The notes under the pieces were generated by a model. It was not told the DNA's origin and did no database searches. It was given only the letters and a program-made list of their open reading frames with translations. A stretch of 64,000 nucleotides of DNA from IMG/VR virus record IMGVR_UViG_3300036846_000743, positions 162,074-226,073 of that record. One strand, 5' to 3'. The first letter of the stretch is position 1. Every line of letters starts with the position of its first letter. Below, in pieces: positions 13,621 through 62,260 of this stretch. A program made the translations under genes and the position numbers.

Positions 13621-13652
13621 CTCCTTGGGACCTACTCTAGCATCGAATAGCT

Positions 13653-13709: not shown

Positions 13710-13799
13710 GTCCCCACGTCACCACCACGCGACGCGTACCTGGTTAATTCTTGCACCCAAGCGATCTTCACCGCCCGAAGACGACCAGAGCGTCGACGA

Positions 13800-34667: not shown

Positions 34668-35258
34668 TCAACGGTTGTCACCGCTGCCCCGGAGCACACC
34701 GCGGTGTGCCCGGTCAGTCAGCTTGTCGTAGTTGGTCTGGGCCACACAGCCCAGCGAGACCCGCATTTCGGTGCAAAAAGCAGACACGTACCACAGGGCA
34801 TCGCCGGCTTCCTTGACCATCCGCTCCCGTTCGGGCGGCTCCACGACGCAGACCGGCGGGAACTCGACACGCTGAGTGTGCTCGACGGCCACGCGGAGAA
34901 CATCCAGGGCCTCGCCGGCCGCATCGATAGCGTCGTAGATCGCCTTCTTTCGCTCCGGAGTCAGTTCCCCGGCCGGGTCATTGCGGTATGCCTTCTTCAT
35001 CAGCTCCATGAGGGCACCGCACGTGCCAGCGACATCGAGAACGTCTATGGCCAGGGCATAATTGTGCGGCTTGATCTGCCGCACGGCCATTTGCATGATG
35101 GCCGTGGCCAGCTCGCCGGCCTCACCGACCAGGGAGATAGCCGGGTAGATGAGCTGGTTGTCGCCGCGCCCTGGATAAACGGCCAGCTCCGTGGTCTTGC
35201 CCTGATAGTCGTCCAGGGTCATCGTAGGTTCCGCGTTACGCGGCGTATCACTCATCAT
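34668..35258 (-). CDS. MazG-like NTP pyrophosphohydrolase with internal insertion
   Basis: YQ......AVYP, GEAGE, KEAGDALWY and NYDKL.DR..RG.L.GSGDNR. Confidence 0.8.
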   Translation of the reverse strand: MMSDTPRNAEPTMTLDDYQGKTTELAVYPGRGDNQLIYPAISLVGEAGELATAIMQMAVRQIKPHNYALAIDVLDVAGTCGALMELMKKAYRNDPAGELTPERKKAIYDAIDAAGEALDVLRVAVEHTQRVEFPPVCVVEPPERERMVKEAGDALWYVSAFCTEMRVSLGCVAQTNYDKLTDRAHRGVLRGSGDNR

Positions 35259-42828: not shown

Positions 42829-43384
42829 CGGGTCGTGTCCAGCCGATCGCCGCCAGCAGGCCGTCCAGGTCCTCGATCGTGTAGATCCATGGAGGTGCCT
42901 TTGGCCGCCCAACCGCGTAGATGAGCTTGGTTCTGCTCGCCTGCCCTGGCTCGCCAAACTCCCTGGGCAGCATGTGTAGGGTCATTCGCTCGCCGAAGCC
43001 GCGCCATCGGAACACCAAAACTGGTGGCTGTTCACCTGGGAATTCGTCGGCAGCTTCCAGGTACGCCCGATGTATGGGCGTGGCGGTGGGCCGCTTGAAG
43101 ACGTCTCCCACGGGCATGTCCACGAGTTTCAGCTTAGCCGCCACCAATCGCAACGGGAAGTCGGCGTACGTGCTAAAGGCGCGGAGACTAACCCCCCACT
43201 GGCCAGTTTCTTCCTGCACTCGCTGAGCGAGCATAGACACCCCGTTGAGCAAACCACCCATCTTGTAGACGTGAGCGATCACTGACTTCTCGTAAGCAGC
43301 CAGCGACATGCCGGCAGCCTGGGACGCACCGTCGCGCGCGGCGGCCTGCCACAGCGCATCTTCCTCGCTCTGATCGTAGCTCAT
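42740..43384 (-). CDS. hypothetical protein
   Basis: ATGA overlap with the RecA-like gene. Confidence 0.6.
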   Translation of the reverse strand: MSYDQSEEDALWQAAARDGASQAAGMSLAAYEKSVIAHVYKMGGLLNGVSMLAQRVQEETGQWGVSLRAFSTYADFPLRLVAAKLKLVDMPVGDVFKRPTATPIHRAYLEAADEFPGEQPPVLVFRWRGFGERMTLHMLPREFGEPGQASRTKLIYAVGRPKAPPWIYTIEDLDGLLAAIGWTRPDEERPLRVSRSGDIRRGRRARARGQAGRD

Positions 43385-46874: not shown

Positions 46875-47627
46875 TCAATCCGTGTCGATCGATCGAACGC
46901 GTTGTGCTTCTGCCAGCGTATAGGTGTCTTCCGGCGGAGGAATACCTTCCTCGATCGGCGTATCTTCCAGGCCCTGCTGCGGGGAGCTTTCCTGGATGCC
47001 ATCCTTCATGAAAAGGGCCATGATGCCAATGACTACGTCATTGGCACCAGTGTCGCGGCATGTAACCACGTACTCACCGTCATCGAGCTTGCCTGAGAGC
47101 CGCGTGCTGTAAAAAAAGCCCGATGGCTTGCCCGGCGTAGCTGTGGGCATACCCGCACGCGGGGCGACCGGCAAGACCGAAAACTTCTTGCTGGCAAAGT
47201 CGTAGAAAAAGTTGTCTTTAACCCTCCGGATCGAGTAGATCAGGACGGTCTTCCTGTAAAACCAGAACACGATGTCCACGCCGCGCCTCCCGAGTGGGCC
47301 TTCCCAGGGCGGCTGTGAAAAGGCTTTGACGCCCGGATCGGACTGGAAGCCCATGACCTGAAGCGCCGTCTTCACGTCCTGCTTCGTAATGCCACCGCAT
47401 ACCGTTTGATCGTGCGTACCGGGCAAAGGAAAGTCCACGCCAACAGTATGTGACGGGACTTCCCCGAAAACTTCAGTCTTCCATTGGTGCACCGACATGT
47501 GGTCCTTGATCTGGCCCACGTACGGCGCAATCGCGTCCACGAACGAGCGGTCGCCGGTCAGCTCCGCAAGGAGCTGACCGGGCTTGGGCACGATGATGCG
47601 CTTCTCATCACTTTCCGAGGTACTCAT
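46875..47627 (-). CDS. hypothetical protein ending in a variant tag (RVRSIDTD)
   Basis: 250 aa; overlaps the polymerase stop region. Confidence 0.7.
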   Translation of the reverse strand: MSTSESDEKRIIVPKPGQLLAELTGDRSFVDAIAPYVGQIKDHMSVHQWKTEVFGEVPSHTVGVDFPLPGTHDQTVCGGITKQDVKTALQVMGFQSDPGVKAFSQPPWEGPLGRRGVDIVFWFYRKTVLIYSIRRVKDNFFYDFASKKFSVLPVAPRAGMPTATPGKPSGFFYSTRLSGKLDDGEYVVTCRDTGANDVVIGIMALFMKDGIQESSPQQGLEDTPIEEGIPPPEDTYTLAEAQRVRSIDTD

Positions 47628-50600
47628 CCGGGATCCCCAAGGACCGACCGCGCTCCGGATCGATCGCCTGTCCCCAATTCAGGAAAACCGAGCAATCGAC
47701 CTTGAAGTGATAGGGCTTCTCCAAGCAACGCCCGCCGCGCCCGGCAGCCTCCATCTTCTTCTTGTCGTCAAAGCGGATGCCATCAAGCGTTCGTGGCATG
47801 ATCTCCACGTCATCAGACAGCGCCAAGACGACCGCTTCGCGAACCTCCTCGATATGCGGAATTTTCACCTCCAGCATAACAGCGTCATGGATCTGGAGCA
47901 CGGTCCGGAACTTGTTGCGGAACCCGTTTATCCGGAGCTGGCGCAGGTTATACATGCCCAGCAAGATAGCGTCTGCCACCAGGTTCTGGATCGGATAGTT
48001 CTTGGCCGATCGGCCCTGGTCAGCCTGGGCTGACTTATCGTCAACCCTGCCGAACCGCCGCATCCGACCGAATGCTCCGACCAGATATGGCGTCCTGCTG
48101 CCAGGCCGCGCTTCGCATTCGGCCAGGAACGAACTGGCGGCCGGATAACGCTTGTAGTAGTTATCGATCAGCCGCTGACACTCCTGTACTGAAACATCAG
48201 CACCCTCTTCGCGGCACTGTCGCGACAGTGCCTCGGCACTACGCCCGTAAGGAACGCCGAACCTCACGTTCTTCGCAGCCACGCGCAGCCCAGGCTTGCC
48301 CAGGGCCTTGAGCGCCTTCTTGTTCGGGTCGCAGCTCAGCTTAAACGCCTCGACGGCTGTCGAAGAATGAAGATCCAGGAAGTCCGGATCATCCTCCGGA
48401 AGCATGGCCCGATTGACGTCCTCGATCATCTTCTCATCCCCGGACTCCCAGGCCAGGGCGGCAATCTCGGCCGCGATGATGTCGAACTCCATGAGCACCG
48501 TGGGCACATCGTCCCATTCACCGGCCGTCACGATCGACCGGATCGGGTTCTTGTAGAGAGGCGCACCCAGGATCTTGGTGTAGTCACCAATCACCTCGCC
48601 GTCTTCCACGTGTCCGAGGATGCGCGCGTAGTCATCCTCGCGGCGCTTGGCCAGGTTCTGGAGATTGGGGCCCGAACTCGAGCAACGACCCGTCTCAACG
48701 GGGTAGAACCGGCTGCGCACCCGGCTGTCCCGCGTATTGACGTAGCTCAGGAAGCCGCCGTCGAACTCGTCCGCCTCGTCGAAGACCACACTGCCGTTGG
48801 CTTCGGCACCCATGGCCTCGCCGATCTTGGGTGGACGAAGTACCGACTGGAGCACCTGGCGGATGTAACGGATGTCCCGCAGCTTCTTGACCCGATCATC
48901 CGTGTGGGCAAAGATCCCCAGAACTTCCTTGTCCACGGCCGGCACGAGCAATTGCTTATCCCTCGGGTTAAGGGTACCCCACGATCTCGACGGCTTACCC
49001 GTAGTCTTGATCGGCACCTTGCCGAGTTTCATCTCGGGATCGGGCATTTGCGGCCGGTTCTTGCCGGTTTTCTTGTCAATGACACGACTGAACTCCTCGC
49101 CGAAAAGCCACGCGCGCACCTGTGCCGGCGAGTTGGGATTGAATGATGGCCAGTTCAATTCCTCGCGGAGCGACGTGGTCAGCCGTTCCTTGACCAGCTC
49201 GAAGACCTTGATCAGCTCCTTGCCGCGATCGACATCGACTGTCACGCCGGTCTCTTCCATCTCCAGGAAGGTGAGCCCGGCCAGCATCGTTCGCCAGTAT
49301 GGTTCCCGTGAACTCTTGTGCCAGACATCCTGATCCAGGAATCCGTCACCATCGTTCAGGGTCCGGGCGAAGTTGAACCTCCAGAACAACCGAAGCGTCG
49401 CGTCGGCGTCATAGAGTGCGTAGGGCACAAGCACGTTATCGGGGATATCACCATATCCGCCCAGGTCCCGGAGTTTGATCCCCATTTCCTTGGCAATCCG
49501 GACCTTGGCTTCCTCCACATCGACGCTCCAGCGCGGGATCGTCGTCCAGCGCATGGCCAGCTGCTCCAGATCGAAGCTCTCCGTAGCCTCGAAGACTGCA
49601 TGCGTCATGTAGCCGGTGTCGAAGCCGCCCGTGTAACGGGTCATCTCCCATGGTTCGTGCGGCTCCACGAGCTGGTTACGGTCAACAAGGTCTCGCGATA
49701 CCAGTACTGGTGCCCGTTTCTCGGCCTCGGCATTCGCATCCTCCTCGATCTGGAACTTGGCAATCTTCTTGCGGTATGCAACACCATTGATCCGCTTCGG
49801 CAGTCGTTCCCTCCTCTGCTCCTCGGTCTCGCCTTTCGGCCCTGGTTCCTGCGGCGACGGGACCGTCCAGAGCGGAGCGAAGTCAATCCCCAGAAACTCG
49901 CGGATCCAGGGAATGTCCGCTTTGAAGAAGTGACCGCCGTGGCGGGTCTTGATGTGGATCTCGCCGTTGCTATGTCGGCCATCGATCAGGCGCCGAAGCT
50001 CGCGAGCGATCAACTCGGTGGTAGGACGCCCGAGGCCACCTCCTTGATCCGACAGGCCAACACAGGTGGCCTTCATGGGAGCCCTCCTGTAGTTGCCCCC
50101 GACAGAGAACTGGATGGTTCGCAGGTACGACCCAGGATCGCCAGGATGGCGGCCATGCCATTCCGCGTCCCAGGCGATCGGCAGGTCACCGTCGATCTCG
50201 GAGTCCCATTCACGACTGGCCTTCTCAAGGATATTGTCTATCACCCTGGCCAGATGCTTCGGCGTGTAGCAGACCGAATGATCCCTCGTGCTCTCGATAT
50301 CCTGCGGCCGCTCGCCCTTGATCAGCTCGGTGAGCTGCCTGAGTCCTGATAGCAGATCGGGATACGCCTCCTGCATGCGGAAGATGTAAGCCGGGTGCGG
50401 CATGCCTATGATCTGGACCGTCTGCTCGCCGTAAGAGCCCAGATCATCGAAAGCTGCGTGGGTCTCGGCATCGAACGGCGGGAAGTTGTACTTCATTTCG
50501 ACGACCCGGCCAGTCATGTTGCCGACGGTGAAACCCTTACCCAGGACCGCCCTGATTGCCTCGGTGCCGAGACAGGCGATGAACTTGGGTCGGACCAGGA

Positions 50601-51258
50601 GGATCTCCTGCCAGAGCAGCGGCGCGCAGTTCTTGAGCCACGCCTGCTGCATGGTCCCCGACGTGGGGTCCAGCCTGTTGAACTTCACGGTGTTGGTGAC
50701 ATACCAGTTGCTCCGGGCCTCCAGCGAGACTCCAAGCTCGCGAAGCGCACGGTGCAGTGGTTCGGACGACTGGCCGATAAAATTCTGCTCAAAGGTAAGC
50801 TCCTCAGCACCTGGATGCTTACCGATGATCATGACGTCGGAGTGATAACGCGGGCCGGCAGCTTTCCTGTATTCGACCCATTCGTAGTCCTGGCTGTTTA
50901 CCGAGCTGTTCCTCGAGTTGAAGAACGGCGGCAATGACCAGCGCCCACCCCGCAGGAATGTGGCGTTGACGAACTGGCCCTTGAAGCTGACCTGAAGTTG
51001 CCACTTGCGCTTGTAGAGCGCATTGCGGTAGAGATGTTCCAGGCCGATCATGGCCGGATCGTCGCGCGCCATCTTGGCCGAGACCTTGGATTCGGTCAGC
51101 TGGAGTACGGTCCTGGCAAAGTCAGGACCAGCCGCCGGAATGAGCGGATGGTCCATTGGCACCAGATGCTTCCATGCGTAGCGAGCCCAGCGTTGCTCGC
51201 GGGACAAATTCTTGACGTCGTCGAAAGTGGTGGAATCATCGTCTTTGGTCGTGGTCAT
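47608..51258 (-). CDS. family A DNA polymerase with N-terminal family-4 UDG-like domain and 3'-5' exonuclease
   Basis: UDG-like GKHPG..E...NFIG, TNTVKF, HPAY; exo DAEW, KADI, YALYD; pol TGRCSS..PNLQN, D....E, R..AK...FG..YG, NYPIQ, IHD; start after AGGGAG. Confidence 0.92.
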   Translation of the reverse strand: MTTTKDDDSTTFDDVKNLSREQRWARYAWKHLVPMDHPLIPAAGPDFARTVLQLTESKVSAKMARDDPAMIGLEHLYRNALYKRKWQLQVSFKGQFVNATFLRGGRWSLPPFFNSRNSSVNSQDYEWVEYRKAAGPRYHSDVMIIGKHPGAEELTFEQNFIGQSSEPLHRALRELGVSLEARSNWYVTNTVKFNRLDPTSGTMQQAWLKNCAPLLWQEILLVRPKFIACLGTEAIRAVLGKGFTVGNMTGRVVEMKYNFPPFDAETHAAFDDLGSYGEQTVQIIGMPHPAYIFRMQEAYPDLLSGLRQLTELIKGERPQDIESTRDHSVCYTPKHLARVIDNILEKASREWDSEIDGDLPIAWDAEWHGRHPGDPGSYLRTIQFSVGGNYRRAPMKATCVGLSDQGGGLGRPTTELIARELRRLIDGRHSNGEIHIKTRHGGHFFKADIPWIREFLGIDFAPLWTVPSPQEPGPKGETEEQRRERLPKRINGVAYRKKIAKFQIEEDANAEAEKRAPVLVSRDLVDRNQLVEPHEPWEMTRYTGGFDTGYMTHAVFEATESFDLEQLAMRWTTIPRWSVDVEEAKVRIAKEMGIKLRDLGGYGDIPDNVLVPYALYDADATLRLFWRFNFARTLNDGDGFLDQDVWHKSSREPYWRTMLAGLTFLEMEETGVTVDVDRGKELIKVFELVKERLTTSLREELNWPSFNPNSPAQVRAWLFGEEFSRVIDKKTGKNRPQMPDPEMKLGKVPIKTTGKPSRSWGTLNPRDKQLLVPAVDKEVLGIFAHTDDRVKKLRDIRYIRQVLQSVLRPPKIGEAMGAEANGSVVFDEADEFDGGFLSYVNTRDSRVRSRFYPVETGRCSSSGPNLQNLAKRREDDYARILGHVEDGEVIGDYTKILGAPLYKNPIRSIVTAGEWDDVPTVLMEFDIIAAEIAALAWESGDEKMIEDVNRAMLPEDDPDFLDLHSSTAVEAFKLSCDPNKKALKALGKPGLRVAAKNVRFGVPYGRSAEALSRQCREEGADVSVQECQRLIDNYYKRYPAASSFLAECEARPGSRTPYLVGAFGRMRRFGRVDDKSAQADQGRSAKNYPIQNLVADAILLGMYNLRQLRINGFRNKFRTVLQIHDAVMLEVKIPHIEEVREAVVLALSDDVEIMPRTLDGIRFDDKKKMEAAGRGGRCLEKPYHFKVDCSVFLNWGQAIDPERGRSLGIPDEYLGK

Positions 51259-51310
51259 CGCAGTCTCCCTTGTCAGCCAATGATAGGCATGCGCGGGAAA
51301 GGGATCGAAG

Positions 51311-52438
51311 TCAGGCAAAGCTGGCGATGTCGATCCCCTTCGCATCGCCAGCGGCGTAGATCAGGTTCCAGATCGTTTCATAGTCGAAATTCCCAGGGTC
51401 TTTCCCGTGGGGTAAGTGGACTCGCACGGCTGCCCCACCGGTCTTGGCATAACTGTTCCCCAGGCTGGTGAAAGCCAGAGCCAGCCGCCGCTGTTCTTTG
51501 TAGTCTTGATCGGCGTCAGGATCAAGCATGAGCACCAGGCAACGGGGCTCGCTGCTGTAAGCTGTCAGGCTCGCAAGCCTGAACATCTGGTGCGCCGTGA
51601 TTGACTTGCCCAGCAGCGCCACCGCAGCGTCGCCGACGGTCCAGACGCCGGTCACGCCTTCGACCACAACGATGATCCGGCCCTGGGATGCTCGATCCCA
51701 ATTGTAGAGGATCCTGCGCTTCTTCATGCCCGGCAGGTTGTAATACTTCCGGACCCCACAGGCGCTCCAGTTCAGTTCGCCGATGTAACGGGCCTGCCAG
51801 CCGACCAGCTGGTGTTCCATCTCGATGGGGACCACGAGCCGGCCCTGGACCTGGGAAAACTCGAATGCCTTGCGGCAATAACACAGGCCATACTTGCGGC
51901 CCAGCTTGGCCGCGTCGTAGCCGCGATCCTCGATGTATCGGACCGCCTGGTGATCGAACGACAACTCATCCAGACGAATAACCCGGCCTGGCATCTCGAC
52001 CGCGACGAGCGGCCCTTCATCGCTCCGGTTACCCGGCCGTGTTGCCAGCAGAAGGTTCCGCTCCCCGGCGCTCATCTCGGCACGGAACAACCGGATCTCA
52101 AGATCCTGTCGGTTCTCGACAGCCCGGCGATCACGACCTGACAGGCAACCCTCGTTGTAGCAGTTGACCAGCCAGTTGATCGTGCGACCATCATCGTCCA
52201 GCGAGCCGTAGCAATAATGGAACCAGAGCCGCTGACGGCTATCGCCGCAGTAAGGGCAGTTGACCCTGTAATACTCGCCCGACTGGATGATGTCCCACTC
52301 CATTCGCTTTTCGACGGAGTTCCAGTGTCGGCTGGCAATGACGACCTCCTCGCCTTCGTTGGCGATGGTGATCTCGCCGAACGCGCGGCGAAGCAATTCG
52401 TAAAGGCCAGGACAAAGCGGGCCGGTGAACTGCATCAT
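51311..52438 (-). CDS. DNA primase (Zn finger + TOPRIM)
   Basis: CPYCGD...CYNEGC, VVVEG and LMLDPD. Confidence 0.85.
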   Translation of the reverse strand: MMQFTGPLCPGLYELLRRAFGEITIANEGEEVVIASRHWNSVEKRMEWDIIQSGEYYRVNCPYCGDSRQRLWFHYCYGSLDDDGRTINWLVNCYNEGCLSGRDRRAVENRQDLEIRLFRAEMSAGERNLLLATRPGNRSDEGPLVAVEMPGRVIRLDELSFDHQAVRYIEDRGYDAAKLGRKYGLCYCRKAFEFSQVQGRLVVPIEMEHQLVGWQARYIGELNWSACGVRKYYNLPGMKKRRILYNWDRASQGRIIVVVEGVTGVWTVGDAAVALLGKSITAHQMFRLASLTAYSSEPRCLVLMLDPDADQDYKEQRRLALAFTSLGNSYAKTGGAAVRVHLPHGKDPGNFDYETIWNLIYAAGDAKGIDIASFA

Positions 52439-52441: not shown

Positions 52442-52675
52442 CTACCCTCCCAGCGCCCGAAACGTGAACACGTTGCCGAGCTTGGTCCAGATCTTGATCA
52501 CGCCGTCTTTCCAACTCACCCGCTTACGTGTCAACACGACAGACTCAGCTCCGGTGGGGTGATACCACTCTCTGCCGTGAACAAGATTCAGCTTCCCGGT
52601 TGTACCAACAAGATCGCCGAATTCCTCCTGGTTGCCCGTGACCGAGATCAGCTTCACACTGACGAGTTCCATCAT
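52442..52675 (-). CDS. small hypothetical protein
   Basis: 77 aa between helicase and primase. Confidence 0.6.
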   Translation of the reverse strand: MMELVSVKLISVTGNQEEFGDLVGTTGKLNLVHGREWYHPTGAESVVLTRKRVSWKDGVIKIWTKLGNVFTFRALGG

Positions 52676-54354
52676 TCATCCCCTTCTGTGCCCGCGTATG
52701 GCTTCCACGGGGCGATCGGTGGGGCAGTCATGCCCGCCGGGACCGGCTCACCGTGGATCTCATTGTAGAGATGCGACTGGACAATCCGCTTGGTAACAAT
52801 CTTGTAATTGTTGCTCGCGTCCATCGTGCGACCGTAGCCGCCATCAAGCGATACCAGAGTGTCCATTCCCTGGTTCTCGCTGCGCCGCCCCTTGGTGTAG
52901 AAGACGCGGCAGCACCCGGTCGAACCATCCTTGACGCCAAAGACGAGGCAGTTGACCAGGTTCTCGGCGAAGTCGCGGGCCTCACCCGCATGAGCATGGT
53001 TCAGCGGGGCCGTCGGCGAGCGCGTATTGGCCTCGCCAGAAAGCTGCTGAAGCAACCACACGGTACAGCCGAATCGCTCGGCCAGCTCCATCTTGGCCAC
53101 CATCGGCGTCTCGTTGATCAGATGCCGCAGGGCTCGGTCCGGGTCCTTGTCCTGGGCCTTCAGGTACCGACGGCACATGATCTTGGTGTAGTCGACAATG
53201 ATCGTATCGATCGCCCAGCCGTACTGCTGTTGCTGCCGCTCGATGTACGAGGCCAGCTCGGGAACCCAGCCTACGCCGCGGCCATCCTTGCGCATGTCCA
53301 TCATCTGCAAATTCTGGCCGATCTGCGCATCGGCCTTGAGCAACCGCTCGTACTCGCCGTCCATCAACTCGGGATCAGCAATCTGCTGCATCTCATACCA
53401 CGTCAGCTCGTAGGGGCGCAGGTGGCCCTTGCGGCTGAGCTGATCCAGCGACTTGAGGCCCTCCAGCGTCGCTTTCCTGATGTGCGCAGCGCACGACATG
53501 ATGCGCGGCCGAATATCGCGATCGATGTCTTCCTCGTAAGACGCGAAGATGATCTGCCGGAGCCGTTCGTGGCCGGCATCGCCGTGGACGTGCCAGGCCA
53601 TACACAGCTTGGCTCGCTCCACGGCAGCTTGTACCGCGAACATGGTTTTGCCGCCGCCGAATGGCCCCAGGATCCCGTTCACGTCACCAGGAGCTTGACC
53701 ACCCATCAGGTTGTCTGCCCACTGGATCCCGATCGGTGTCGTATCGATCGTGGTCGGCACCCAGCCCGCAGGAAGCATGGTCTGAAATGGATTGCTGCCG
53801 ATCGCCTGGACGGCCCGGTCCTTGAGAGTGATCTTGTTCAGATAAGCGCCGAAGCCCATTACATTGCGGCCGCTAGCACTGTCGATCACGCGGCGGACCT
53901 TGTCCTGGATCTGCCGCTCCTGGAGGAACTTCCTCAAGAGCGTGAGGCCATACGGCACGCTCAAGTCATTCTCATTGACTCCCATGTACGCATGATAGAG
54001 AAGCCCGTTATACGGGTCGGCATCGTCGGGTCGACCGACAATATCGTTGATCAGGAACTGCGACTGCCGCAGAATCGCATCATCATCCAGAATGCGCTTG
54101 ACCTCGGTGTGGACCGCCACGTAAGGGATCCCACCGATCGTGTATAGCTTGGAGTCCCCCAGCTGGAAGAAGCCGTCGATCAAGATCCGATAATGCCGCT
54201 CAGAATTCGCATCCCAGTCGTCAATCTCGACGTGCTGACGAGCCTCGGCGTAGACTGCGGGCACCCGGATGATATGGATGAGCAACTCCTCCAACTCGGC
54301 CGGAGTCATGCGTGGCTCATCCTGTACCCCGCCACTCCCGAATTTCCCTGCCAT
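52672..54354 (-). CDS. DnaB-like (SF4) replicative helicase
   Basis: GPFGGGKT, SYEE, IIVDY, LQQLS and KGR. Confidence 0.85.
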   Translation of the reverse strand: MAGKFGSGGVQDEPRMTPAELEELLIHIIRVPAVYAEARQHVEIDDWDANSERHYRILIDGFFQLGDSKLYTIGGIPYVAVHTEVKRILDDDAILRQSQFLINDIVGRPDDADPYNGLLYHAYMGVNENDLSVPYGLTLLRKFLQERQIQDKVRRVIDSASGRNVMGFGAYLNKITLKDRAVQAIGSNPFQTMLPAGWVPTTIDTTPIGIQWADNLMGGQAPGDVNGILGPFGGGKTMFAVQAAVERAKLCMAWHVHGDAGHERLRQIIFASYEEDIDRDIRPRIMSCAAHIRKATLEGLKSLDQLSRKGHLRPYELTWYEMQQIADPELMDGEYERLLKADAQIGQNLQMMDMRKDGRGVGWVPELASYIERQQQQYGWAIDTIIVDYTKIMCRRYLKAQDKDPDRALRHLINETPMVAKMELAERFGCTVWLLQQLSGEANTRSPTAPLNHAHAGEARDFAENLVNCLVFGVKDGSTGCCRVFYTKGRRSENQGMDTLVSLDGGYGRTMDASNNYKIVTKRIVQSHLYNEIHGEPVPAGMTAPPIAPWKPYAGTEGDE

Positions 54355-55046
54355 CAGAGCACCTCACTGTAGAAATGGTCGGCCGCCTTGCGCAACTCAT
54401 CTGGAATACGATCGCCCCAGGTAGCGTCGTACGCCTCACGGTCGAAGACATACATCCGGAATGCCTCCTGTTTGAACCGCTCAGCTACATCATCAGCGCC
54501 ACCGATCGTTCCCACGCAGTAGCGGTAGAGCGGTGACAGTTCGTTGGTTGGATCGTTCAAGGCACGGCGCGCCGCAGCCTCGACGTCCATCTTGTCGTAG
54601 AGTTGGTGGACCGTGGTCGCAGCCTTGAACCGATGATCCTCCATCTTGAGGTTCTCGCTATAGACGGTGTACGCGTCTGCGAGCATCCGCGCACGCCGCA
54701 GCGACAGCGCATTGGCAAACTGGTTGGGAAAAGGCGGTGTCGGGCTCTTCCACTCCCGGAATGTACCCCGGACCAGCAGGATCGGGCTGATCGAGTTGGA
54801 GAGCGCGTAGCGGACGATGTCGAACCAGACGGGCTTGTCGTAGACCTTGCCCTGTCCATCGCGACCACCGTCCCAGCGAGGTATAGGCTGAGATCCATAC
54901 GTGCACGGCCCGCCACCTTGCTTGGTCTCGACATGCCGACGGTACTCGAGGATGTAGTAAGTTCGTACCGTGTTGGCCATGTCATAGAGATCATGGCCGT
55001 TGTCGACCCTGTGGTTGCTGCGCGTTGGCATCGCCAAGAGCCTCAA
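54354..55046 (-). CDS. hypothetical protein
   Basis: About 230 aa; translationally coupled to the helicase. Confidence 0.65.
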   Translation of the reverse strand: MRLLAMPTRSNHRVDNGHDLYDMANTVRTYYILEYRRHVETKQGGGPCTYGSQPIPRWDGGRDGQGKVYDKPVWFDIVRYALSNSISPILLVRGTFREWKSPTPPFPNQFANALSLRRARMLADAYTVYSENLKMEDHRFKAATTVHQLYDKMDVEAAARRALNDPTNELSPLYRYCVGTIGGADDVAERFKQEAFRMYVFDREAYDATWGDRIPDELRKAADHFYSEVL

Positions 55047-56587
55047 GTGAAAAACATCCGTGCAACGCCTGAACTGGAGAATGTGCCAGCTGGCTCGATC
55101 TGCACCCAGGCGTGCTTCTTGTAAACACGGCGTCGTGCCATGGCCTGCTTGTAAAACTGCTCGTCAAACTCGTCATTGAAGTCATAGACGACACCGTATT
55201 CCTTTCCGGACTCATCGTGAATACGCGAGACGCGAGACGGTCCCTGAGTCGCATCGATGGGCGAGGAACCCCCGCCAGCCCAGATCAGGGCCGCCAGGGC
55301 GTCGAATGACACACCCAAACGCCAGACGCCGGTAGCAATGGCGCCCCGGATCTTGCCTGCTTCGAAGTCCTCGCGGAGTTGCTTGCGAACAGCAACCGTC
55401 AATGGCGTGTAGTTAACCGGCAGCAACCCGTACTTGCGGTAGTAGCCCTCATCGGCCTCGTCGATGTTGCCGTAGCAGAGCGCGAAGTCAGGCATGAGCC
55501 TGGCCAGGTGCAGCAAATGTTCAATCTTATCGACCAGCACTAAGATCTGGTCGCCTTCTTCGTAGTGCTTTTGAGCGATCTTAGCGATATGCGCATTCCG
55601 GACCTTATTCGTCCAGATGCCATGCCGTTTCCTCGCTGTATCGCCCTGTAGCCCCTTCGTCGGGTTGCCACCCATTTCCACCCGCTGCCAGCGTACCTCG
55701 ATCGGTACGACCAGCTTGAGGCCAACAGCCTCGGGGTAGGTCAGCTTAAACAGAGTCCCGCCGAAGACCGCTTCCATGCGGGCATCTGCGTTATCGGATC
55801 GTCCCTCGACGGTGGCCGTGAAGCCAAAGCGAATGGCCTGGGGGGTCGTCGTGACGATATCGGCAACGTAGGTCTCGGCGAGCAGCTCGTGAACCTCGTC
55901 GCCAAGGAACAGATCCGCAGTCCCAGCGTAATTCCCCACCGACGCAGCCGTAGCCACAGTCACGCGGGCTTGCTTGGCCCGCCCGGCTCCGCGCTGGCCG
56001 ATCGACGGCTGCGGCAGATAGCGGAGCAGCACGCGGATTGTCTTCTGCACGTTGTCAGTCGACTTCACGCAGATCAGGATCTGGGCCGTAGGTAGAAGCA
56101 TTGCCAGGGCGGCGAATAGCTCAGTCTTGCCGAAACCAGCGGCAGCATCGATCACGCCGCCGCGACGAGCCTTGTAGGCCGCCTCGATGGTCCGCAGGGC
56201 TTCTTCCTGGCGGGGCCGGAACTGGAATGACCCCAGGTTGTCCCAGTGCCACTCCAGCTGCTGAGGAAACTGGGGGGAGTCATCAACATAGCAGATCTGA
56301 TAACCCTGGCTGGCGAGTATCTTCTGTACCCGGTCATAATAACCAGCCGGGAAGTTAAGGCAGCCGTAGTCATCGATGCTGAACAGCTTGCGCTGCTCGG
56401 TCTTGATCCGCTGACCGGAAGACTTACCGAACGCTTCACGGCCGTACAGCCGCGTCACGTGCCGGTACTGCATGTAGTAGGTCAGCTCGGAATAGACGTC
56501 GATCGGCAGTGGCTCGTCGAGCCGGCTAGCCAGGTAGAGCGCATTACCGTTTCGGACCAGTAACGCTTTGAGTGGCGAAGTGATCAT
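55043..56587 (-). CDS. superfamily 2 helicase (UvsW/XPB-like)
   Basis: RPRQ, AAAGFGKT, DEVH, GFTAT and Q...RVSR. Confidence 0.9.
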   Translation of the reverse strand: MITSPLKALLVRNGNALYLASRLDEPLPIDVYSELTYYMQYRHVTRLYGREAFGKSSGQRIKTEQRKLFSIDDYGCLNFPAGYYDRVQKILASQGYQICYVDDSPQFPQQLEWHWDNLGSFQFRPRQEEALRTIEAAYKARRGGVIDAAAGFGKTELFAALAMLLPTAQILICVKSTDNVQKTIRVLLRYLPQPSIGQRGAGRAKQARVTVATAASVGNYAGTADLFLGDEVHELLAETYVADIVTTTPQAIRFGFTATVEGRSDNADARMEAVFGGTLFKLTYPEAVGLKLVVPIEVRWQRVEMGGNPTKGLQGDTARKRHGIWTNKVRNAHIAKIAQKHYEEGDQILVLVDKIEHLLHLARLMPDFALCYGNIDEADEGYYRKYGLLPVNYTPLTVAVRKQLREDFEAGKIRGAIATGVWRLGVSFDALAALIWAGGGSSPIDATQGPSRVSRIHDESGKEYGVVYDFNDEFDEQFYKQAMARRRVYKKHAWVQIEPAGTFSSSGVARMFFT

Positions 56588-56692
56588 TGTTCCCCTTCCG
56601 CAGTCACAAACTGCGCAAAGGGGCTTGTCAGGGCTATTTGCGCCCTGTACACTTCCTTTGGCATGTGAGGAGCCCTGGTTTTGGGATCAAGT
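56588..56692 (-). other. 105-nt structured intergenic segment
   Basis: Hairpins at 56592-56623 (contains the helicase RBS GAAGGGG) and 56629-56647. Confidence 0.5.
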
Positions 56693-57235
56693 TCACGCGA
56701 GCCCGTCGGGTGGCCCCCCGGCGGGCTCGCTGCTTTTCAGCACGTCGCTCTGCGGGATGGCCCTCCCCGCTGGATGAACCGACACGACAGTAAACCGGCC
56801 GTATTCGCCCGGTTTATAGGGCGAAATACCCCGGAACTTGCCAGCCACTTCCATCAACGCTACGAACGTATTGACTGTGAGATCGACCGGTAGAACACAA
56901 TCTATGCCGACAACCCGCCCAGGCAGGAACGCCTCGTGCTGGGCATACCTGGGCCGGGCGTTCTCAGGCCGGTTAGGTTCTTGGATATACCGCTGCCAAA
57001 GCCGCGGGCTGCCGTCAATAGCCGGTGACCATTCGATCTTCTTGACGGTGGCAATCGGGATATTCTTGATCCTGGCGGCATGGGTCACTATAGCTCGCCA
57101 CCAGGTCTGATGGAACAGCACTTGGCCGTCAGGGGTCCGTGGGAAGCAAAATACAGTTCCCAACCCTTCACGGGGGCGCTTATCTGCACCCAAGCAAGGC
57201 AAAATAAAACGAAGCAGGACCTTGACCTCTTGCAC
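56693..57235 (-). CDS. stand-alone RAMP (Cas7/Csm3-like) protein
   Basis: VKVLLRFILPCLG; FPRTPDGQVLF...WRAIV..AA; HEAFLPG..V.I; C-terminal Gly loop AGKFRGISPYKPGEYGRFTV; AGGAGG RBS. Confidence 0.6.
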   Translation of the reverse strand: MQEVKVLLRFILPCLGADKRPREGLGTVFCFPRTPDGQVLFHQTWWRAIVTHAARIKNIPIATVKKIEWSPAIDGSPRLWQRYIQEPNRPENARPRYAQHEAFLPGRVVGIDCVLPVDLTVNTFVALMEVAGKFRGISPYKPGEYGRFTVVSVHPAGRAIPQSDVLKSSEPAGGPPDGLA

Positions 57236-57254
57236 GTCGGATCCTCCTGCCGAC

Positions 57255-57283
57255 GCACGGCGTTACGCTGCGTAACGCCGTGC
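57255..57283. repeat. perfect 14-bp inverted repeat with a 1-nt centre
   Basis: gcacggcgttacgc-t-gcgtaacgccgtgc between the IS110/Nop-like and RAMP-like genes. Confidence 0.95.
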
Positions 57284-57286
57284 CGG

Positions 57287-58312
57287 TCATTTCCCGCCCG
57301 CGACAACATCGCGATGCCGCACATAAGCAGCTGCTTCTGCGCGATCCACAAAGAAATGGTCTGGCGCGAACAAGCCTTCCTGGCGAGGACGCTTGCCCGG
57401 CGCTGCGGGCTTACCTTCGACCCGATCGCAGTAAAGCGCATCGAGCCACACCAGCCGCAGATAGTCCACGAACATCTGACTGGCTCGAAGAGCACCCTTT
57501 ACAGGGCCTTCTTCTCGCCGGTAGCGGCGCCAGAGAAAACAGCCTGGATGATCACGATGCTGGATCGGCGGTGGGCCAAGACCAAACCAGGTATCGAACA
57601 CCAGGCGGCACCGCGCCGTCCCGTCAGACTCCTTGTAGAACCCGAGCACGCTGGCCATCGTTCGCGGATCAAGGCCCAGATAAGCATGCAGCTTGGCCGC
57701 GTCGTCGTGATAAGAGATGACGTCGCCATCGCGGCGAGGCGCGCGCAGCGACACGTACCAGCGAGGATCAAGTATGACCCCCAGCAGCCGTGCCAACTTA
57801 TCCAGATGAAGATACTTGATGAATGACAGGGCCGGCCACGCCGGATGTTCCTCGAGCATCCGATGGCGAAAGTCGCCCATGCTGAAGTCTTGATCGTAAC
57901 CGGCGGCCGCTGCAATGGCGTATGCCGGATAGTCGGTATCGCCGAATTCGTGCCAGCCTCCCAGGGCCGGGTTCAGCCCGTCAGCAGCCGAATCACGCAT
58001 CCGAACCAGCATGAGCTTCGGATTGTCACGCTCGGCGCGAGTCCGGCCAACAACTGCCGGACTCGCAACTTCCAACCGTAGCAGATCACCGCTCCTCTTG
58101 CGGCCGTGCATCGCACACAGAGCCCGGGCGTTGCCGACGCTACCGACCATCCGGATATGACGGGCGCGCTGACAAGCACCGTCCCCGAGAAAGCTCTCAA
58201 CAGGTGCGTGCGTATTGGTGGCGACGCGACCGCCATCCACATACCACACAAGGCCATCCTGCGCCGTGTGCATCTTGAGAACCTGATCCTCGAGGACTTC
58301 CGGTAAAGACAT
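57287..58312 (-). CDS. IS110/Nop-domain-like (Tas-like) protein, apparently catalytically degenerate
   Basis: HPAWPALSFI.....LARLLGVILDPRWY...AKLHAYLGLDP...GALRASQMFVDYLRLVW; no DEDD tetrad recognisable in the N-terminal domain. Confidence 0.55.
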   Translation of the reverse strand: MSLPEVLEDQVLKMHTAQDGLVWYVDGGRVATNTHAPVESFLGDGACQRARHIRMVGSVGNARALCAMHGRKRSGDLLRLEVASPAVVGRTRAERDNPKLMLVRMRDSAADGLNPALGGWHEFGDTDYPAYAIAAAAGYDQDFSMGDFRHRMLEEHPAWPALSFIKYLHLDKLARLLGVILDPRWYVSLRAPRRDGDVISYHDDAAKLHAYLGLDPRTMASVLGFYKESDGTARCRLVFDTWFGLGPPPIQHRDHPGCFLWRRYRREEGPVKGALRASQMFVDYLRLVWLDALYCDRVEGKPAAPGKRPRQEGLFAPDHFFVDRAEAAAYVRHRDVVAGGK

Positions 58313-58345: not shown

Positions 58346-60478
58346 TCATCCGGCCAGTCGCAGGACACCGTCGAAGAGAACCTCGAAGGATGGCTCGTGC
58401 GTGACGAGCAGGCATTGAATGCCACGACTCTCGGAGAGATCGCGCATCTTGCCGATCGCCACTTCCAGGCATGCAAGGTTCCTCTCGTCAAGCGACTCGG
58501 TCGGTTCATCCAGACACAGCAGCCCAGCCGTGCCTGCGAACAAGGAGTTTACAGCGACACGGAAAGCCAAGGCAAGCAGGACCTTCTGACCTTCACTAAG
58601 ACGCTGCGCGGGCGAAACCGTACCAGCATAGGCCCCACGCAGGAATGTAGTCGTGAAGTTCAGGCCATCACCCAGGCTCACCCGAAAGTCGGCATCGAAC
58701 GACTCCAGCAGCTCGTTGGTGTCGTCCGCCAAGATCTCCAAGTAATTATGCGCCACGATCTTGGGCAGGCGATCGTGGTGCATGACCTTGCGGACCTCGC
58801 TCAGGTGGTAGACCCAGAGACGGTCCATCTCGGCCTTGCGCTCGGCCGCTTCCAGCCGCCCTAGCATATCCTCGTCGGACTTCAGGGCGTCCTTGATGGC
58901 ATGCAGCTCACCTTCGGCCCTGACGACCAGCTGACCGAGCGGCTCGACCTCGCGCAGCGCTTCCCGAGCCTTCTTGACCGCAGCCTCGTCGGGAGCCGTG
59001 CCTAGCGCATCACTGCTCTTGACGTGCTTCAGACTGATCTCGTCCAGCTTGCCGCTGCTCCGGCTCACTTCCTTGCGCAGATGCGTAACCCGGATCTCGG
59101 TCTCGGCGATGGCCCTGTCCATGGTTATCCCGGCATCGATCATCTCGCGACAGGTGTCGGGATCAGCAACAGGAACTTCCCCGTTGCTGGCTGTGAAAGC
59201 CGCCTGGTCAAGAGATAGTGTGATCATGCGCTTGGCATGATCCTGGGACCAGCCTTGCCACCGCGCGTGCTCGCGACTGTAACCGGCGTGTTCCTCCTGG
59301 ACCTGAGTCGCATCCTTGAGCGCCTTCTTCAAGCCAGGCAGTTCAGTCTTGTAGAGCTTAACTTTCTTCAGGATCACATCGGTCTCCGTGCCGCAGGTCG
59401 GACAGACCTTCGGTTCGTCCTTGAACCATTTCAGTAGCTCTTCGCGCGTCCTGATCGAATGCCCCAGCTCATCGATCTTCTCCTTCACCACCTTTTCGCC
59501 CGGATAGCCCTTGGGCTCTTGCGGCTCTGGATGTGCTGTCCGTTCCGTTTTCAGGCCATCTTCTCGGGCCTTGAGCGCTTCTTCCTGCTCCCGCCGTTTC
59601 TTGGCGACTTCCCATTTGGCCAGGGCCTCCTGGGCGGCATTGATGTCCCCGGCGGCGCCCGCTTTGGCCTGTTCGAGTTCAGCCTGCTCCTGCACAGCAG
59701 CCGTCAGCTCTTTCTGCCTGGCCTCCAGGTCGGCTGCCAGCTCATCGACCTGCTCGCCCAGGGAAACGACGACCACGCGATCACGCCGCCACTGTTCGTC
59801 GCGACTGACCAGCGCCTGGGCCGCCGGGACGTCGAGCTTGTTGATCACGGCGTTGTCCTTGGCGATCGCCGCCACCAGCTCATCCCGGCGACCCTGGTTG
59901 CGCGCGACCCGCGCACGCAACGTGTCGATCTCCGGATTGGGCTGTGCCGGGTTGACCCGCTTGATCTCGGCATCCAGGAGTTTGTAGATAACATCGGCGC
60001 GCGCCAGGTCGAACAGCTGGCCGAAGGTCTTGTTGCGCTCGGCTGGCGTCTCGTCGATGAATGCAGCCATGTTCCGCTGCGGGACGAAAATGTACTCGGA
60101 CAGGATACGCTGATCCACTCCGAGTAGATCCAGGACCGCCGCGGTCACGGCGTTGTCGCCGTCGATCGCGTCGCCACTGCCGATCCGGCAAGTACTGACC
60201 CCTCGACGTAGTACGCGGATAATCTCGACCTTGATCCCGTTATGCTCGAAGTTGAGCACGATCCGGGACCGCTCCCGGTTATCTGCCAGCTGGCAGATAT
60301 TCTCGGTCTTAGTCCCCGCGTTGTCGATTGTGCCCAGGATGGCGCCTCGTATCGCCTTAACAACATTGCTCTTGCCAGAGCCATTCGGCCCCACGATGCC
60401 GTTGAGCCCGTGATGCCAGACATGCTTCAAATGCCGATGCTGGCAGAAATTCTCCAGGACAAGCCGTTCCAGCTTCAT
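58346..60478 (-). CDS. SbcC/Rad50-like ATPase
   Basis: GPNGSGKS, coiled coil with CPTC hook, LSEGQ, LDEP and VTH. Confidence 0.92.
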   Translation of the reverse strand: MKLERLVLENFCQHRHLKHVWHHGLNGIVGPNGSGKSNVVKAIRGAILGTIDNAGTKTENICQLADNRERSRIVLNFEHNGIKVEIIRVLRRGVSTCRIGSGDAIDGDNAVTAAVLDLLGVDQRILSEYIFVPQRNMAAFIDETPAERNKTFGQLFDLARADVIYKLLDAEIKRVNPAQPNPEIDTLRARVARNQGRRDELVAAIAKDNAVINKLDVPAAQALVSRDEQWRRDRVVVVSLGEQVDELAADLEARQKELTAAVQEQAELEQAKAGAAGDINAAQEALAKWEVAKKRREQEEALKAREDGLKTERTAHPEPQEPKGYPGEKVVKEKIDELGHSIRTREELLKWFKDEPKVCPTCGTETDVILKKVKLYKTELPGLKKALKDATQVQEEHAGYSREHARWQGWSQDHAKRMITLSLDQAAFTASNGEVPVADPDTCREMIDAGITMDRAIAETEIRVTHLRKEVSRSSGKLDEISLKHVKSSDALGTAPDEAAVKKAREALREVEPLGQLVVRAEGELHAIKDALKSDEDMLGRLEAAERKAEMDRLWVYHLSEVRKVMHHDRLPKIVAHNYLEILADDTNELLESFDADFRVSLGDGLNFTTTFLRGAYAGTVSPAQRLSEGQKVLLALAFRVAVNSLFAGTAGLLCLDEPTESLDERNLACLEVAIGKMRDLSESRGIQCLLVTHEPSFEVLFDGVLRLAG

Positions 60479-61587
60479 ACGCTCTCCTCACTTGATGCTT
60501 CGTAGAACTCATTTCTCATGGCCTCCAGCTCGATCCGCGGATCGGCGACTTCCAGCAGCCGTACCGATGAATCCCGCACTGGGCCGGGCTCGCAAACCAT
60601 GTGAACAGCACCGGCCAGGCCACGATCCGCAACCTGTCGACGAGCTGTAGCCGACGGTGCCCGTTCGTCGCGACGCCGGCTCCGGTGCCGCAGGAACAGA
60701 TGACAGCGATCTTCGAGTGCATTAGCCAGCTTGGCACCAAGGCCCTCGATGTCATCGTAGTAGGCAATATCGATCACGGCCCGCTTGATCCCCTCGCCGT
60801 CCAGGGGCAAGTCACGGCGCGCCAGAAAGGCTTCAGCTTCCTGATGTGTCGTGATCTGGTAGCGGCGAATCGGCCGCGTATCGAGATTGATCGACTCGAC
60901 ACGGAACGGGTTCGCATCGTTATAGATGGCATAGAACCGTTTTGTCTCTTCTTCGGCCACATCGCGGACGTGGGTTGAACCTGGCGAAAGCGCCACGCCC
61001 ATTGACCCATTCAGGGCCTTATAGCTCAGCTCTGTGTGCACGTGATAGTCACCAGCCAGTAAGTGCATCGCGAACGGTAACTGCGCCATCGACAGCTCGG
61101 CCTGGCGCACGTTGCCCATGAATTCGTGCCATACCTGGTGACAGAGCAGGAATGATCCTGACGGGGCCTGGAGGGTAGCATACGTCGCCATGAACTCGGC
61201 AGGCCGCATGTAGTCGAGCCCGTAGATCATGAAGTCGTCCACGTCGTACACCAGACCGTGCAAGTGAACCGGATCTGGATGGATCGAAGGCCAGTCCTGC
61301 CGGCCATCGTGCTGCCCGAGGACATAGACGACCTGTACTTCGTCACCGCTGAGCTTCTCGAACTGATCACGCAGGAACTTGATCGTCTCGGGCCGCGGCG
61401 TCGGCTTGTCCAGGATGTCTCCGCCCAGCGCCAGAATATTCGCTTTGTGTTCGCAGCAGAACCCAACGATCTGCTCGAACGAGTGCTGAGCATCCCCAGT
61501 GATGCCTCGGTACTTCCAGGCGCCGGTTTCGTCGAAATGCAGGTCCGCCGCGAACACGATGGACGGACGGTCGAGCTTGGTCATCAC
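60475..61587 (-). CDS. SbcD/Mre11-like nuclease
   Basis: ADLH, GGDILD, GQHD, CHQ, GDYH and PGS. Confidence 0.9.
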   Translation of the reverse strand: MMTKLDRPSIVFAADLHFDETGAWKYRGITGDAQHSFEQIVGFCCEHKANILALGGDILDKPTPRPETIKFLRDQFEKLSGDEVQVVYVLGQHDGRQDWPSIHPDPVHLHGLVYDVDDFMIYGLDYMRPAEFMATYATLQAPSGSFLLCHQVWHEFMGNVRQAELSMAQLPFAMHLLAGDYHVHTELSYKALNGSMGVALSPGSTHVRDVAEEETKRFYAIYNDANPFRVESINLDTRPIRRYQITTHQEAEAFLARRDLPLDGEGIKRAVIDIAYYDDIEGLGAKLANALEDRCHLFLRHRSRRRDERAPSATARRQVADRGLAGAVHMVCEPGPVRDSSVRLLEVADPRIELEAMRNEFYEASSEESV

Positions 61588-61886: not shown

Positions 61887-62011
61887 TTGACAGTTTGGCC
61901 GCTCCCTGGTGACCATGAGGATACAGCCTGGTTGGGCCCTCCAAAGTGCGCCGACTGGATGGCGCTCCCCAACAAGGATGGACCATGGATGTTTCGCACG
62001 GAGGAAGTCTC
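61887..62011 (+). promoter_or_regulatory. putative csrA promoter and GGA-rich leader (CsrA-binding sites)
   Basis: TTGACA at 61887 with a weak -10 (GACCAT); seven GGA at 61919, 61957, 61976, 61980, 61987, 62000 and 62003. Confidence 0.65.
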
Positions 62012-62260
62012 ATGCTAGTCCTATCGCGAAAAATTGGCGAGCGGATCCACATCAATGATGATGTCGTCATCACGGTGATCCGGATCCAAGGGGACAAGGT
62101 GCGCCTCGGTATCGAAGCCCCTCGCATCATCCCGGTGCACCGGGCAGAAGTCCTGGAACGGATCAGGATCGCGGCGGCCCTGGCGCCACAGCCCGATACA
62201 TCGGCTCCTGGCATGCCTGCATCTGAAGAGCGGCCTACCAGAGTGGCTCGCCGTCCCTAG
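62012..62260 (+). CDS. csrA: carbon storage regulator CsrA/RsmA
   Basis: MLVLSRKIGERIHINDDVVITVIRIQGDKVRLGIEAPRIIPVHRAEV; GGAGG RBS. Confidence 0.95.
   Translation: MLVLSRKIGERIHINDDVVITVIRIQGDKVRLGIEAPRIIPVHRAEVLERIRIAAALAPQPDTSAPGMPASEERPTRVARRP

Follow-up and report, generated by a model that had tools for sequence, protein, structure and literature searches.

A minimal RAMP protein with a predicted Cas7 fold in the replication and recombination operon of uncultured large phages

RAMP proteins were long known only from CRISPR-Cas systems. In 2026, work on the VIPR systems described a minimal RAMP encoded by phages, Vipr (about 20 kDa), together with an accessory vap gene and RNAs called vrRNAs (bioRxiv 10.64898/2026.04.26.720920; 10.64898/2026.04.26.720927), and RAMPs were proposed to have begun in phages as small RNA-guided DNA binders (VIPR preprints). 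A vrRNA is composed of 9-16 YNNGG repeats and a 3' tail, and the vrRNAs lie in long intergenic regions on either side of vipr; Vipr forms polymers on the vrRNA and acts by silencing target DNA (10.64898/2026.04.26.720920; 10.64898/2026.04.26.720927). In Vipr of phage SUSP1, the residues that read GGY are H17, D177, R138, W178 and R179, of which H17 and D177 read the first guanine, W178 stacks and R179 is cationic (10.64898/2026.04.26.720927), and a helical bundle after strand 1, which carries K33, accommodates a skipped target base (VIPR preprints). VIPR is the published precedent for RNA-guided, phage-encoded minimal RAMPs (10.64898/2026.04.26.720920). Here we compare with it a small protein, ORF180, that is encoded in a 64-kb part (hereafter the window) of the 226,073-bp IMG/VR contig IMGVR_UViG_3300036846_000743. 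A preliminary description of the window, made from the sequence alone, had pointed out three consecutive co-oriented genes between sbcCD and dnaB, which it took for an IS110/Nop-like protein, a stand-alone RAMP and a superfamily 2 (SF2) helicase, and had proposed that their products form one domesticated guide-RNA complex. The three open reading frames (ORFs) are in place on the minus strand, namely ORF341 (57287-58312), ORF180 (56693-57235) and the helicase (55043-56587), and all peptide motifs quoted in that description are present in their translations. In our reading, to which we give a probability of roughly 40%, they make up no single RNA-guided machine; the three genes are neighbours in the replication/recombination operon of uncultured large phages that form a deep clade, and ORF180 is a guide-less accessory.

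The source gene call for ORF180 (P0083) is truncated and comprises only 131 amino acids. Since a GTG start codon at 57235 is preceded by an AGGAGG Shine-Dalgarno sequence and the N-terminus encoded from there is conserved among homologues, the protein is 180 amino acids long. It has 22 homologues with 73% mean column identity. In the AlphaFold2 model (predicted local distance difference test, pLDDT, 85.2), residues 1-157 mostly scored above 85 and the tail 158-180 was disordered, and the secondary structure follows the beta-alpha-beta-beta-alpha-beta topology of an RRM core (strands 2-10, 78-84/96-103, 108-115 and 148-155; helices 43-57 and 121-134). A basic, variable loop of 11 residues links strands 78-84 and 96-103, which is consistent with a thumb, and a G-rich loop (residues 132-147, motif GKFRGISPYKPGEYGRF) lies between helix 2 and strand 4, with G132, G136, G143 and G146 being invariant in 21 sequences. 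Comparison of the model with the PDB by Foldseek gave 115 matches at E<=1e-3, of which the top 50 were all Cas7-type (Csm3, Cmr4, Csf2, type VII Cas7, Cas7-11 domains and I-A Cas7), with a probability of 1.00 to Cas7 proteins and a best match at E 8.9e-6 and a template modelling (TM) score of 0.61. Sequence profiles of ORF180 gave no match in Pfam (21 members, E<=10), PHROGs, PADLOC or PDB profiles, and neither ORF180 nor ORF341 has a DNA or protein match among GenBank phages. As modelled, ORF180 is a genuine minimal RAMP with a Cas7 fold, and the RAMP/Cas7 call of the preliminary description was borne out, with only Cas7-type proteins returned by the fold search (E ~1e-5) and the G-rich loop in place. 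Like Cas7 of class 1 CRISPR systems it has this loop between helix 2 and strand 4, whereas its core is smaller (about 157 amino acids), and whereas the genes of those proteins come with a CRISPR array and further cas genes, ORF180 is accompanied by neither. It also differs from Csm3 and Cmr4 in having no conserved Asp after strand 1, which we take to be the position of their catalytic residue.

ORF180 was compared with Vipr by hhalign, using an ORF180 profile of 25 sequences and a Vipr profile of 6 sequences that included five diverse homologues from GenBank phages. The alignment reached a probability of 77% (P 2e-5, score 39), against P 0.3-0.4 and scores around 13 for the controls (reversed sequence and unrelated profiles). 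Its confident part pairs ORF180 108-151 with Vipr 145-188, corresponding to strand 3, helix 2, the G-loop and strand 4, and the motif G-[ILV]-[GS]-x-[WYF]-[RK]-P..[YF]G.F is common to the ORF180 family and Vipr. When every stop-to-stop ORF of the window was searched with a Vipr hidden Markov model (HMM), ORF180 ranked first (E 0.043; runner-up 1.4), and members of the ORF180 family scored up to 16 bits with the same HMM; BLAST and phmmer at database scale gave no link between the ORF180 family and Vipr. At the level of sequence profiles the homology thus appears real but remote, a matter of relatedness and not of clear membership.

The two proteins are alike in being phage-encoded single-RRM RAMPs of about 20 kDa with a G-loop and a thumb (in ORF180 a putative one), in being prone to loss, and, for some vipr genes, in sitting among replication genes as ORF180 does. 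In the hhalign residue map, W178 and R179 of Vipr correspond to Y140 and K141 of ORF180, which are conservative changes, whereas H17 and D177 correspond to the invariant G16 and the invariant P139, respectively. Vipr has the helical bundle with K33 after strand 1; ORF180 is without it, and the 32 residues between its strand 1 and helix 1 were modelled by AlphaFold2 as two short strands and no helix. Vipr genes have long flanking intergenic regions with vrRNA arrays and ORF180 has neither of these, and, unlike vipr, the ORF180 gene keeps to a single operon slot in one phage clade. ORF180 cannot be called a canonical Vipr and fails three defining VIPR features, because the residues reading the first guanine, the helical bundle and a nearby vrRNA are all lacking.

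Scans for guide RNAs covered the 64-kb window and, in 24 relatives, the sequence within 10 kb of the locus. Our own scan recovered the vrRNA arrays of SUSP1, used as a control, whose vipr lies at 28474-29061 of the sequence L072. In a motif-agnostic scan for a period of 5, the window scored 21 of 30 (null 20-22) and the 24 relatives scored 18-23, so that no array was found, whereas all six Vipr-positive phages used as controls scored 26-30 of 30, including phiHSIC with its GCA/NN repeats and high-GC actinophages. A phased GG scan gave 6/10 for the window, equal to the Markov null, versus 10/10 for SUSP1, and a GGY scan of 32 loci never exceeded 5/9, versus 8-9 of 9 next to vipr in 4 of 5 further phages, high-GC Gordonia and Mycobacterium phages among them. 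No CRISPR array, tRNA, Rfam family or cas1/cas2 signal was present in the window, in agreement with the preliminary description as to arrays and cas1/cas2; at E<=1 Rfam gave only a chance-level ctRNA match (ctRNA_pGA1, E 0.2). PADLOC found no cas match for the ORF341, ORF180 or ORF230 proteins (ORF230 being the gene after the helicase), and the neighbours in the 24 loci are replication genes, not cas genes. The gaps flanking ORF180 measure 51 and 105 nt in the window and shrink to zero or a few bases in several relatives. As a separate observation on the control phages, vrRNA-like arrays beside vipr overlap coding sequences annotated as hypothetical in Trine (L075:2143-2187), phiHSIC (L076:2340-2389) and Pipp (L077:1853-2058); these hypothetical-protein annotations are probably wrong, and the unit in phiHSIC is the non-canonical GCA/NN.

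Synteny was followed through 24 IMG/VR loci and other assemblies, in which the identity of ORF341 to that of the window ranged from 25% to 100%. The order was everywhere sbcD, sbcC, ORF341, ORF180 where present, helicase, ORF230, DnaB, primase and a polymerase A (PolA) with a uracil-DNA glycosylase (UDG)-like domain. ORF341 always follows sbcC, its start overlapping the sbcC stop by 4 nt in 8 loci, and a 4-nt overlap joins ORF180 to the helicase in 2 loci. Both ORF341 and the helicase are present in every relative, including those in which ORF180 is lost. ORF180 occurs in this slot only and is absent from 7 of the 23 distinct loci (L019/L020, L021, L024, L026, L028, L029 and L031/L032); no decayed remnant of it was found in the loci without the gene, and in L028 ORF341 abuts the helicase. 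In a tree of the helicase, carriers of the RAMP gene are found in all major branches, and the tree requires at least 4 independent losses, of which some are recent (L021 beside L017, L019 beside L023). ORF180 is therefore ancestral to the clade, fixed in position and dispensable, and the trio is not an obligate module, because the RAMP was lost at least 4 times while ORF341 and the helicase persisted. A metagenome scan added three short contigs only. In a 246-kb ENA contig, sbcC and the helicase are split into several overlapping ORFs (L003:7841-9970 and 11720-13971) between intact neighbours, probably through assembly frameshifts and not because they are true pseudogenes.

Both gaps around ORF180 are structured, as had been described before. 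The 51-nt gap contains a perfect palindrome of 29 nt (57255-57283), about 20 nt upstream of the ORF180 start, which is the longest perfect palindrome in the window. Its core, CGTTACGCNGCGTAACG, is conserved in six close relatives and occurs in the window in 4 copies at <=3 mismatches, versus 0.22 expected (1516-1532, 11881-11897, 35234-35250 and 57261-57277), at least 2 of which lie directly upstream of minus-strand gene starts. The palindrome is probably a regulatory site or an RNA hairpin, and CGTTACGCNGCGTAACG may be a phage-specific operator or promoter element. A GC-rich, terminator-like hairpin with 17-nt arms overlaps the last ORF180 codons (56697-56730). In relatives, two of its base pairs are changed on both sides, replacing A by V and L by F in the protein; the tail encoded there (EPAGGPxDGL) is conserved, and more distant homologues are without it. 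Because the compensatory changes are not silent in the protein and the model shows the tail as disordered, this peptide seems to be conserved for the nucleic-acid hairpin and not as protein. The 105-nt helicase leader (56588-56692, minus strand) contains two hairpins and is conserved in close relatives: an alignment of 168 nt, comprising the leader and the last 60 nt of ORF180, has a mean column identity of 87% in six relatives. In the consensus fold, GCCCCUUUGCGC in the second leader hairpin pairs with the ribosome-binding site of the helicase, GGAGGGG, and for the gap together with the 3' end of ORF180 the fold z-score is -4.56. Where the window has the hairpin at the end of ORF180, more distant relatives have terminator-like hairpins, several with a U-run, followed by a conserved promoter-like region. 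The gaps appear to be operon punctuation and translational control, not guide RNA. A small antisense RNA on the plus strand was also considered, on account of a promoter-like sequence at 56625-56653, a terminator-like hairpin and the ctRNA_pGA1 match mentioned above; it was rejected as chance, because the counts of promoters and terminators equal the shuffled expectation and the hairpin is explained as sense-strand punctuation.

Like ORF180, ORF341 is a real gene, and it belongs to a very large family. A word-indexed search gave 70 homologues, and a profile of 47 sequences gave, in an exhaustive search, 1068 cluster representatives at E<=1e-3 (645 at E<=1e-30); the family comprises more than 1000 clusters at 50% identity, and the listed matches are all about 270-370 amino acids long. 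No match was found in Pfam, PHROGs, PADLOC or PDB sequence profiles. The AlphaFold2 model is confident (pLDDT 92.3, predicted TM score 0.90; strands 12-16, 22-26, 52-56, 79-83 and 121-122, helices 59-73, 98-111 and 128-136), and in it the N-terminal half reads as an RNase H-like fold and the C-terminal half as helical. Its top two matches in the PDB were ISCro4 (E 0.10, probability 0.82) and IS621 (E 0.22, probability 0.69), with TM 0.32-0.34 and alignments spanning the full length of ORF341, followed by SPT6 and retroviral integrase cores; a fold search of BFVD gave nothing significant. These two IS110 proteins have an RNase-H-like N-terminal domain and then a helical region, which is the order in ORF341, and its series hPxxxxLxFI...LDPRWY...KLxxYLGLxP runs parallel to IPGIG...GDxxRF...AAxxGLVP of IS110. 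The best local hhalign path fell on just the motif that the preliminary description had singled out, aligning ORF341 147-219 with IS4321 197-253, the Tnp motif, at P 0.2, which is suggestive and not significant. Alignments of the ORF341 profile with IS110 profiles of 1 (IS4321), 13 and 24 sequences (43-100% identity) gave P 0.2-0.65 (0.2-0.45 with the two larger ones), these profiles being limited to the IS1111/IS4321 subgroup, since searches for members returned close relatives only. Neither PF01548 nor PF02371 matched any of 47 family members at E<=10, whereas both matched the positive control IS4321 at about 1e-20 each.

The polar residues of ORF341 conserved in 198 sequences are R54, N61, H121, D127, Y131, H156, D182, R184, R234, R262, E326 and H333, and the only acidic ones among those conserved at >=80% are D127, D182 and E326. 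In the same sequences there is no conserved strand-1 Asp, the strand-4 Glu is found in 64%, and no Ser follows YLGLxP. Because the DEDD and Ser residues are not conserved, ORF341 can hardly be an active DEDD/Ser recombinase, and as judged from its sequence it is not a member of IS110; a fold shared with IS110 is possible. The setting differs as well, since IS110 elements are mobile and have a bridge RNA and element ends, whereas ORF341 is a single-copy syntenic core gene after sbcC whose locus shows neither, with gaps of only 33 and 51 nt. What stands of the IS110-like assignment made earlier is thus the pair of top PDB matches, not significant in Foldseek, hhalign or Pfam and without DEDD/Ser residues; the Nop domain proposed with it fell away, as no Nop-type protein was among the top 50 PDB or BFVD matches of ORF341 and Pfam gave no Nop match. 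A NurA-like or Bax1-like nuclease partner was considered for ORF341 and rejected, neither being among its fold matches and no acidic catalytic set being conserved.

The third gene encodes an intact SF2 helicase, as had been claimed: it matches ResIII (E 8.5e-16) and phrog_16 (E 1.9e-38, residues 77-481) and carries the GFGKT and DEVH motifs. Its closest solved relative is archaeal XPB/RAD25 (PDB 2fwr, E 8.6e-8). It is an ordinary helicase of the XPB/UvsW type that belongs to core replication/recombination.

On the reading of an operon of neighbours, ORF180 would, like Cas7 and Vipr, form polymers on single-stranded nucleic acid, making contacts through helix 1, the G-loop (with aromatic Y140 and basic K141) and the thumb, and it would do so without GGY-reading residues, helical bundle or pentanucleotide-repeat guide. 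As it would polymerise without a repeat guide, ORF180 could be a dispensable accessory that holds RNA or single-stranded DNA (ssDNA), such as R-loops, primers or resected ends, and it would serve the adjacent helicase and the SbcCD/UvsX machinery of recombination-dependent replication. ORF341 would combine a catalytically inactive RNase-H fold with a helical domain and act as a DNA-binding partner of SbcCD, and the hairpins would be a terminator-like element, a translational control element of the helicase and a repeated regulatory palindrome. Tentatively, these proposals can be joined in the statement that the ORF180 family is an unrecognised branch of the phage RAMP lineage behind Vipr and Cas7, hard-wired in a jumbo-phage operon and without a pentanucleotide-repeat guide. 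Such a branch could represent the first RAMP to work without a guide, assembling into a filament on ssDNA, R-loops or primers to serve the XPB/UvsW-like helicase, or it could rely on a guide of a new type; in that picture, ORF341 might be an IS110/RuvC-like protein that has lost its catalysis and acts together with SbcCD.

Several points weigh against this explanation. To our knowledge, all RAMPs characterised to date bind specific guide RNAs, so that a guide-independent role would be without precedent. The nucleic-acid ligand and the role of ORF180 are argued by analogy with Cas7 and Vipr, and gene order and coupling are what suggest ORF341 as an SbcCD partner. The link to Vipr is modest (probability 77%) and comes from about 43 columns. 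The guide scan spans 64 kb of the 226-kb contig and would miss a guide locus elsewhere on it, and repeated losses are to be expected of a conflict gene that is useful only under some conditions no less than of an accessory to replication.

The main rival is that ORF180 is a divergent VIPR-like effector, in effect an eighth type, whose guide is encoded elsewhere on the 226-kb genome or is non-periodic, which silences competing phages or satellites, and for which the helicase is maybe Vap-like. We consider this unlikely on balance, yet it has much to draw on: the remote homology to Vipr together with the Cas7 fold, a G-loop that keeps the stacking aromatic and the basic residue, helicase or nuclease accessory genes in VIPR types III-V, a vipr gene between PolA and primase/helicase in Gordonia phage Trine and one near ligase and PolA in SUSP1, and a repeated loss of ORF180 that resembles the deletion of vipr-vap1 in 97 relatives of SUSP1. 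Against this stand the lack of any 3+2 pentanucleotide array in the 64 kb or within 10 kb in the 24 relatives, where the controls were positive in 6/6, flanking gaps of only 51 and 105 nt that fall to zero in several relatives, G and P at the equivalents of the first-guanine readers H17 and D177, the missing helical bundle with K33, and a single slot held over very deep divergence, unlike mobile conflict loci. The guide-RNA complex of all three products, with which the preliminary description had explained the locus, we hold to be very improbable. The genes are indeed adjacent and co-oriented with conserved order, IS110 recombinases are the top two PDB matches of ORF341, and the best hhalign path aligns LDPRWY...YLGL.P with the IS110 Tnp motif; however, ORF341 and the helicase persist where ORF180 is lost, a terminator-like hairpin parts ORF180 from the helicase in several lineages while ORF341 is coupled to sbcC, the similarity to IS110 is non-significant by Foldseek, hhalign and Pfam with DEDD/Ser not conserved, no Nop fold is in the top 50 of either library, and a bridge RNA would have no room, as only 33 nt separate ORF341 from the gene before it and Rfam is empty. 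With no guide-like RNA or array found, the RAMP lost at least 4 times and the gaps read as punctuation, this model finds no support.

The remaining two rivals are minor and concern ORF180 alone. It would be surprising, though not without parallel, if ORF180 were a viral Cas7 decoy, that is an anti-CRISPR derived from a cas gene, which poisons the class 1 assembly of the host or soaks up crRNA. Viruses are reported to carry solo cas genes that act against CRISPR (bioRxiv 10.1101/2023.06.24.545427), and these would be a precedent for a dispensable protein with a Cas7 fold; known viral cas decoys are, however, recognisably recent captures, whereas for ORF180 no similarity to a Cas7 family was detectable in sequence (Pfam, PADLOC and PDB profiles), its profile is closer to that of phage Vipr, and its inheritance has been vertical, in a fixed slot, in phages that diverge widely. 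About equally improbable is that ORF180 regulates or processes the mRNA of its own operon as an RNA-binding protein, attaching to the upstream palindrome or the 3'-end hairpin in the manner of Cas6 or Cas5. Cas6-type RAMPs bind hairpins, and conserved hairpins flank ORF180 in the subclade of the window, one of them with compensatory changes; these hairpins are nevertheless lineage-specific, other carriers of ORF180 having no gaps or quite different terminator-like hairpins, and L021, which is without ORF180, keeps the terminator and promoter region. In addition, the palindrome is also found at three other sites of the window, and the fold matches are to Cas7, not to Cas6.

The phage itself is large, uncultured and from soil. 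The window has about 60% G+C and densely packed genes, predominantly on the minus strand, and the contigs of the clade are mostly 150 to 246 kb. Among GenBank phages this phage has no DNA match, and by tblastn its PolA is about 25% identical to PolA of T5-like phages and of an Exiguobacterium phage; it is far from anything cultured. The operon begins with a sbcD/Mre11-like phosphoesterase (60475-61587; Pfam Metallophos E 4.1e-5), found at the same position in all relatives, and a sbcC/Rad50-like ATPase (58346-60478; SMC_N E 9.6e-17, phrog_77 E 4.3e-34), both on the minus strand like all genes of the operon. After ORF341, ORF180 and the helicase comes ORF230 (54354-55046), a conserved protein kept in all relatives that has no family match in Pfam, PHROGs or PADLOC; its start and stop codons overlap both neighbours, by which it appears translationally coupled to the SF2 helicase and the DnaB-like gene. 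ORF230 is a candidate helicase loader. It is followed by a DnaB-like replicative helicase (52672-54354; phrog_19 E 1.2e-14), an ORF of 77 amino acids (52442-52675), a DNA primase (51311-52438; phrog_47 E 3.7e-36) and a DNA polymerase A of 1245 amino acids (47608-51345) with an N-terminal UDG-like domain, whose homologues in L001 and L003 carry PF03167 and PF00476. A perfect 12-bp hairpin with a GCAA loop, directly downstream of the PolA stop (47554-47581), is probably the end of the replication operon. Divergent from the operon, a CsrA homologue (Pfam CsrA, E 6e-22) is encoded upstream of sbcD on the plus strand (61946-62260), at the same position in most relatives; the structured leader of the helicase gene contains GGA motifs, and CsrA might regulate the operon. 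Away from these genes, a 21-nt tandem repeat at 4694-4802 (5.2 copies, 94% identity), within a predicted minus-strand gene at 4638-5636, would encode a heptad peptide repeat.

Recombination genes of the window include SbcCD, helicases and a UvsX/RecA-like recombinase (43381-44916, minus strand; phrog_97 E 2.7e-11), which with 511 amino acids is unusually long for its family; the UvsX-like recombinase and SbcCD point to recombination-dependent replication of the T4 style. As in the T4-type set, SbcCD (in T4 the Mre11-Rad50 proteins gp46/47), a UvsX-like protein, an SF2 helicase (UvsW), and a DnaB-like helicase with primase (gp41/61) are found in one region, whereas equivalents of gp32, UvsY and gp59 were not recognised here, nor was a canonical single-stranded DNA-binding protein among the 19 genes scanned; ORF341, ORF180 and ORF230, which belong to no known family, are in the operon instead.

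That phages have RAMPs outside CRISPR became known with the preprints of 2026, and what is new here is a family that fails three VIPR features and follows a different genomic logic. For biochemistry, ORF180 offers a compact RAMP core of about 160 residues, and ORF341, with a very large family, a confident yet unmatched fold and a constant coupling to SbcCD, is a candidate for a new cofactor of Mre11-Rad50. The context of a replication operon would surprise a specialist in CRISPR evolution, and a third kind of RAMP would bear directly on the ancestral role of these proteins, raising the question of whether the ancestral RAMP served the general handling of single-stranded nucleic acid or programmable targeting.

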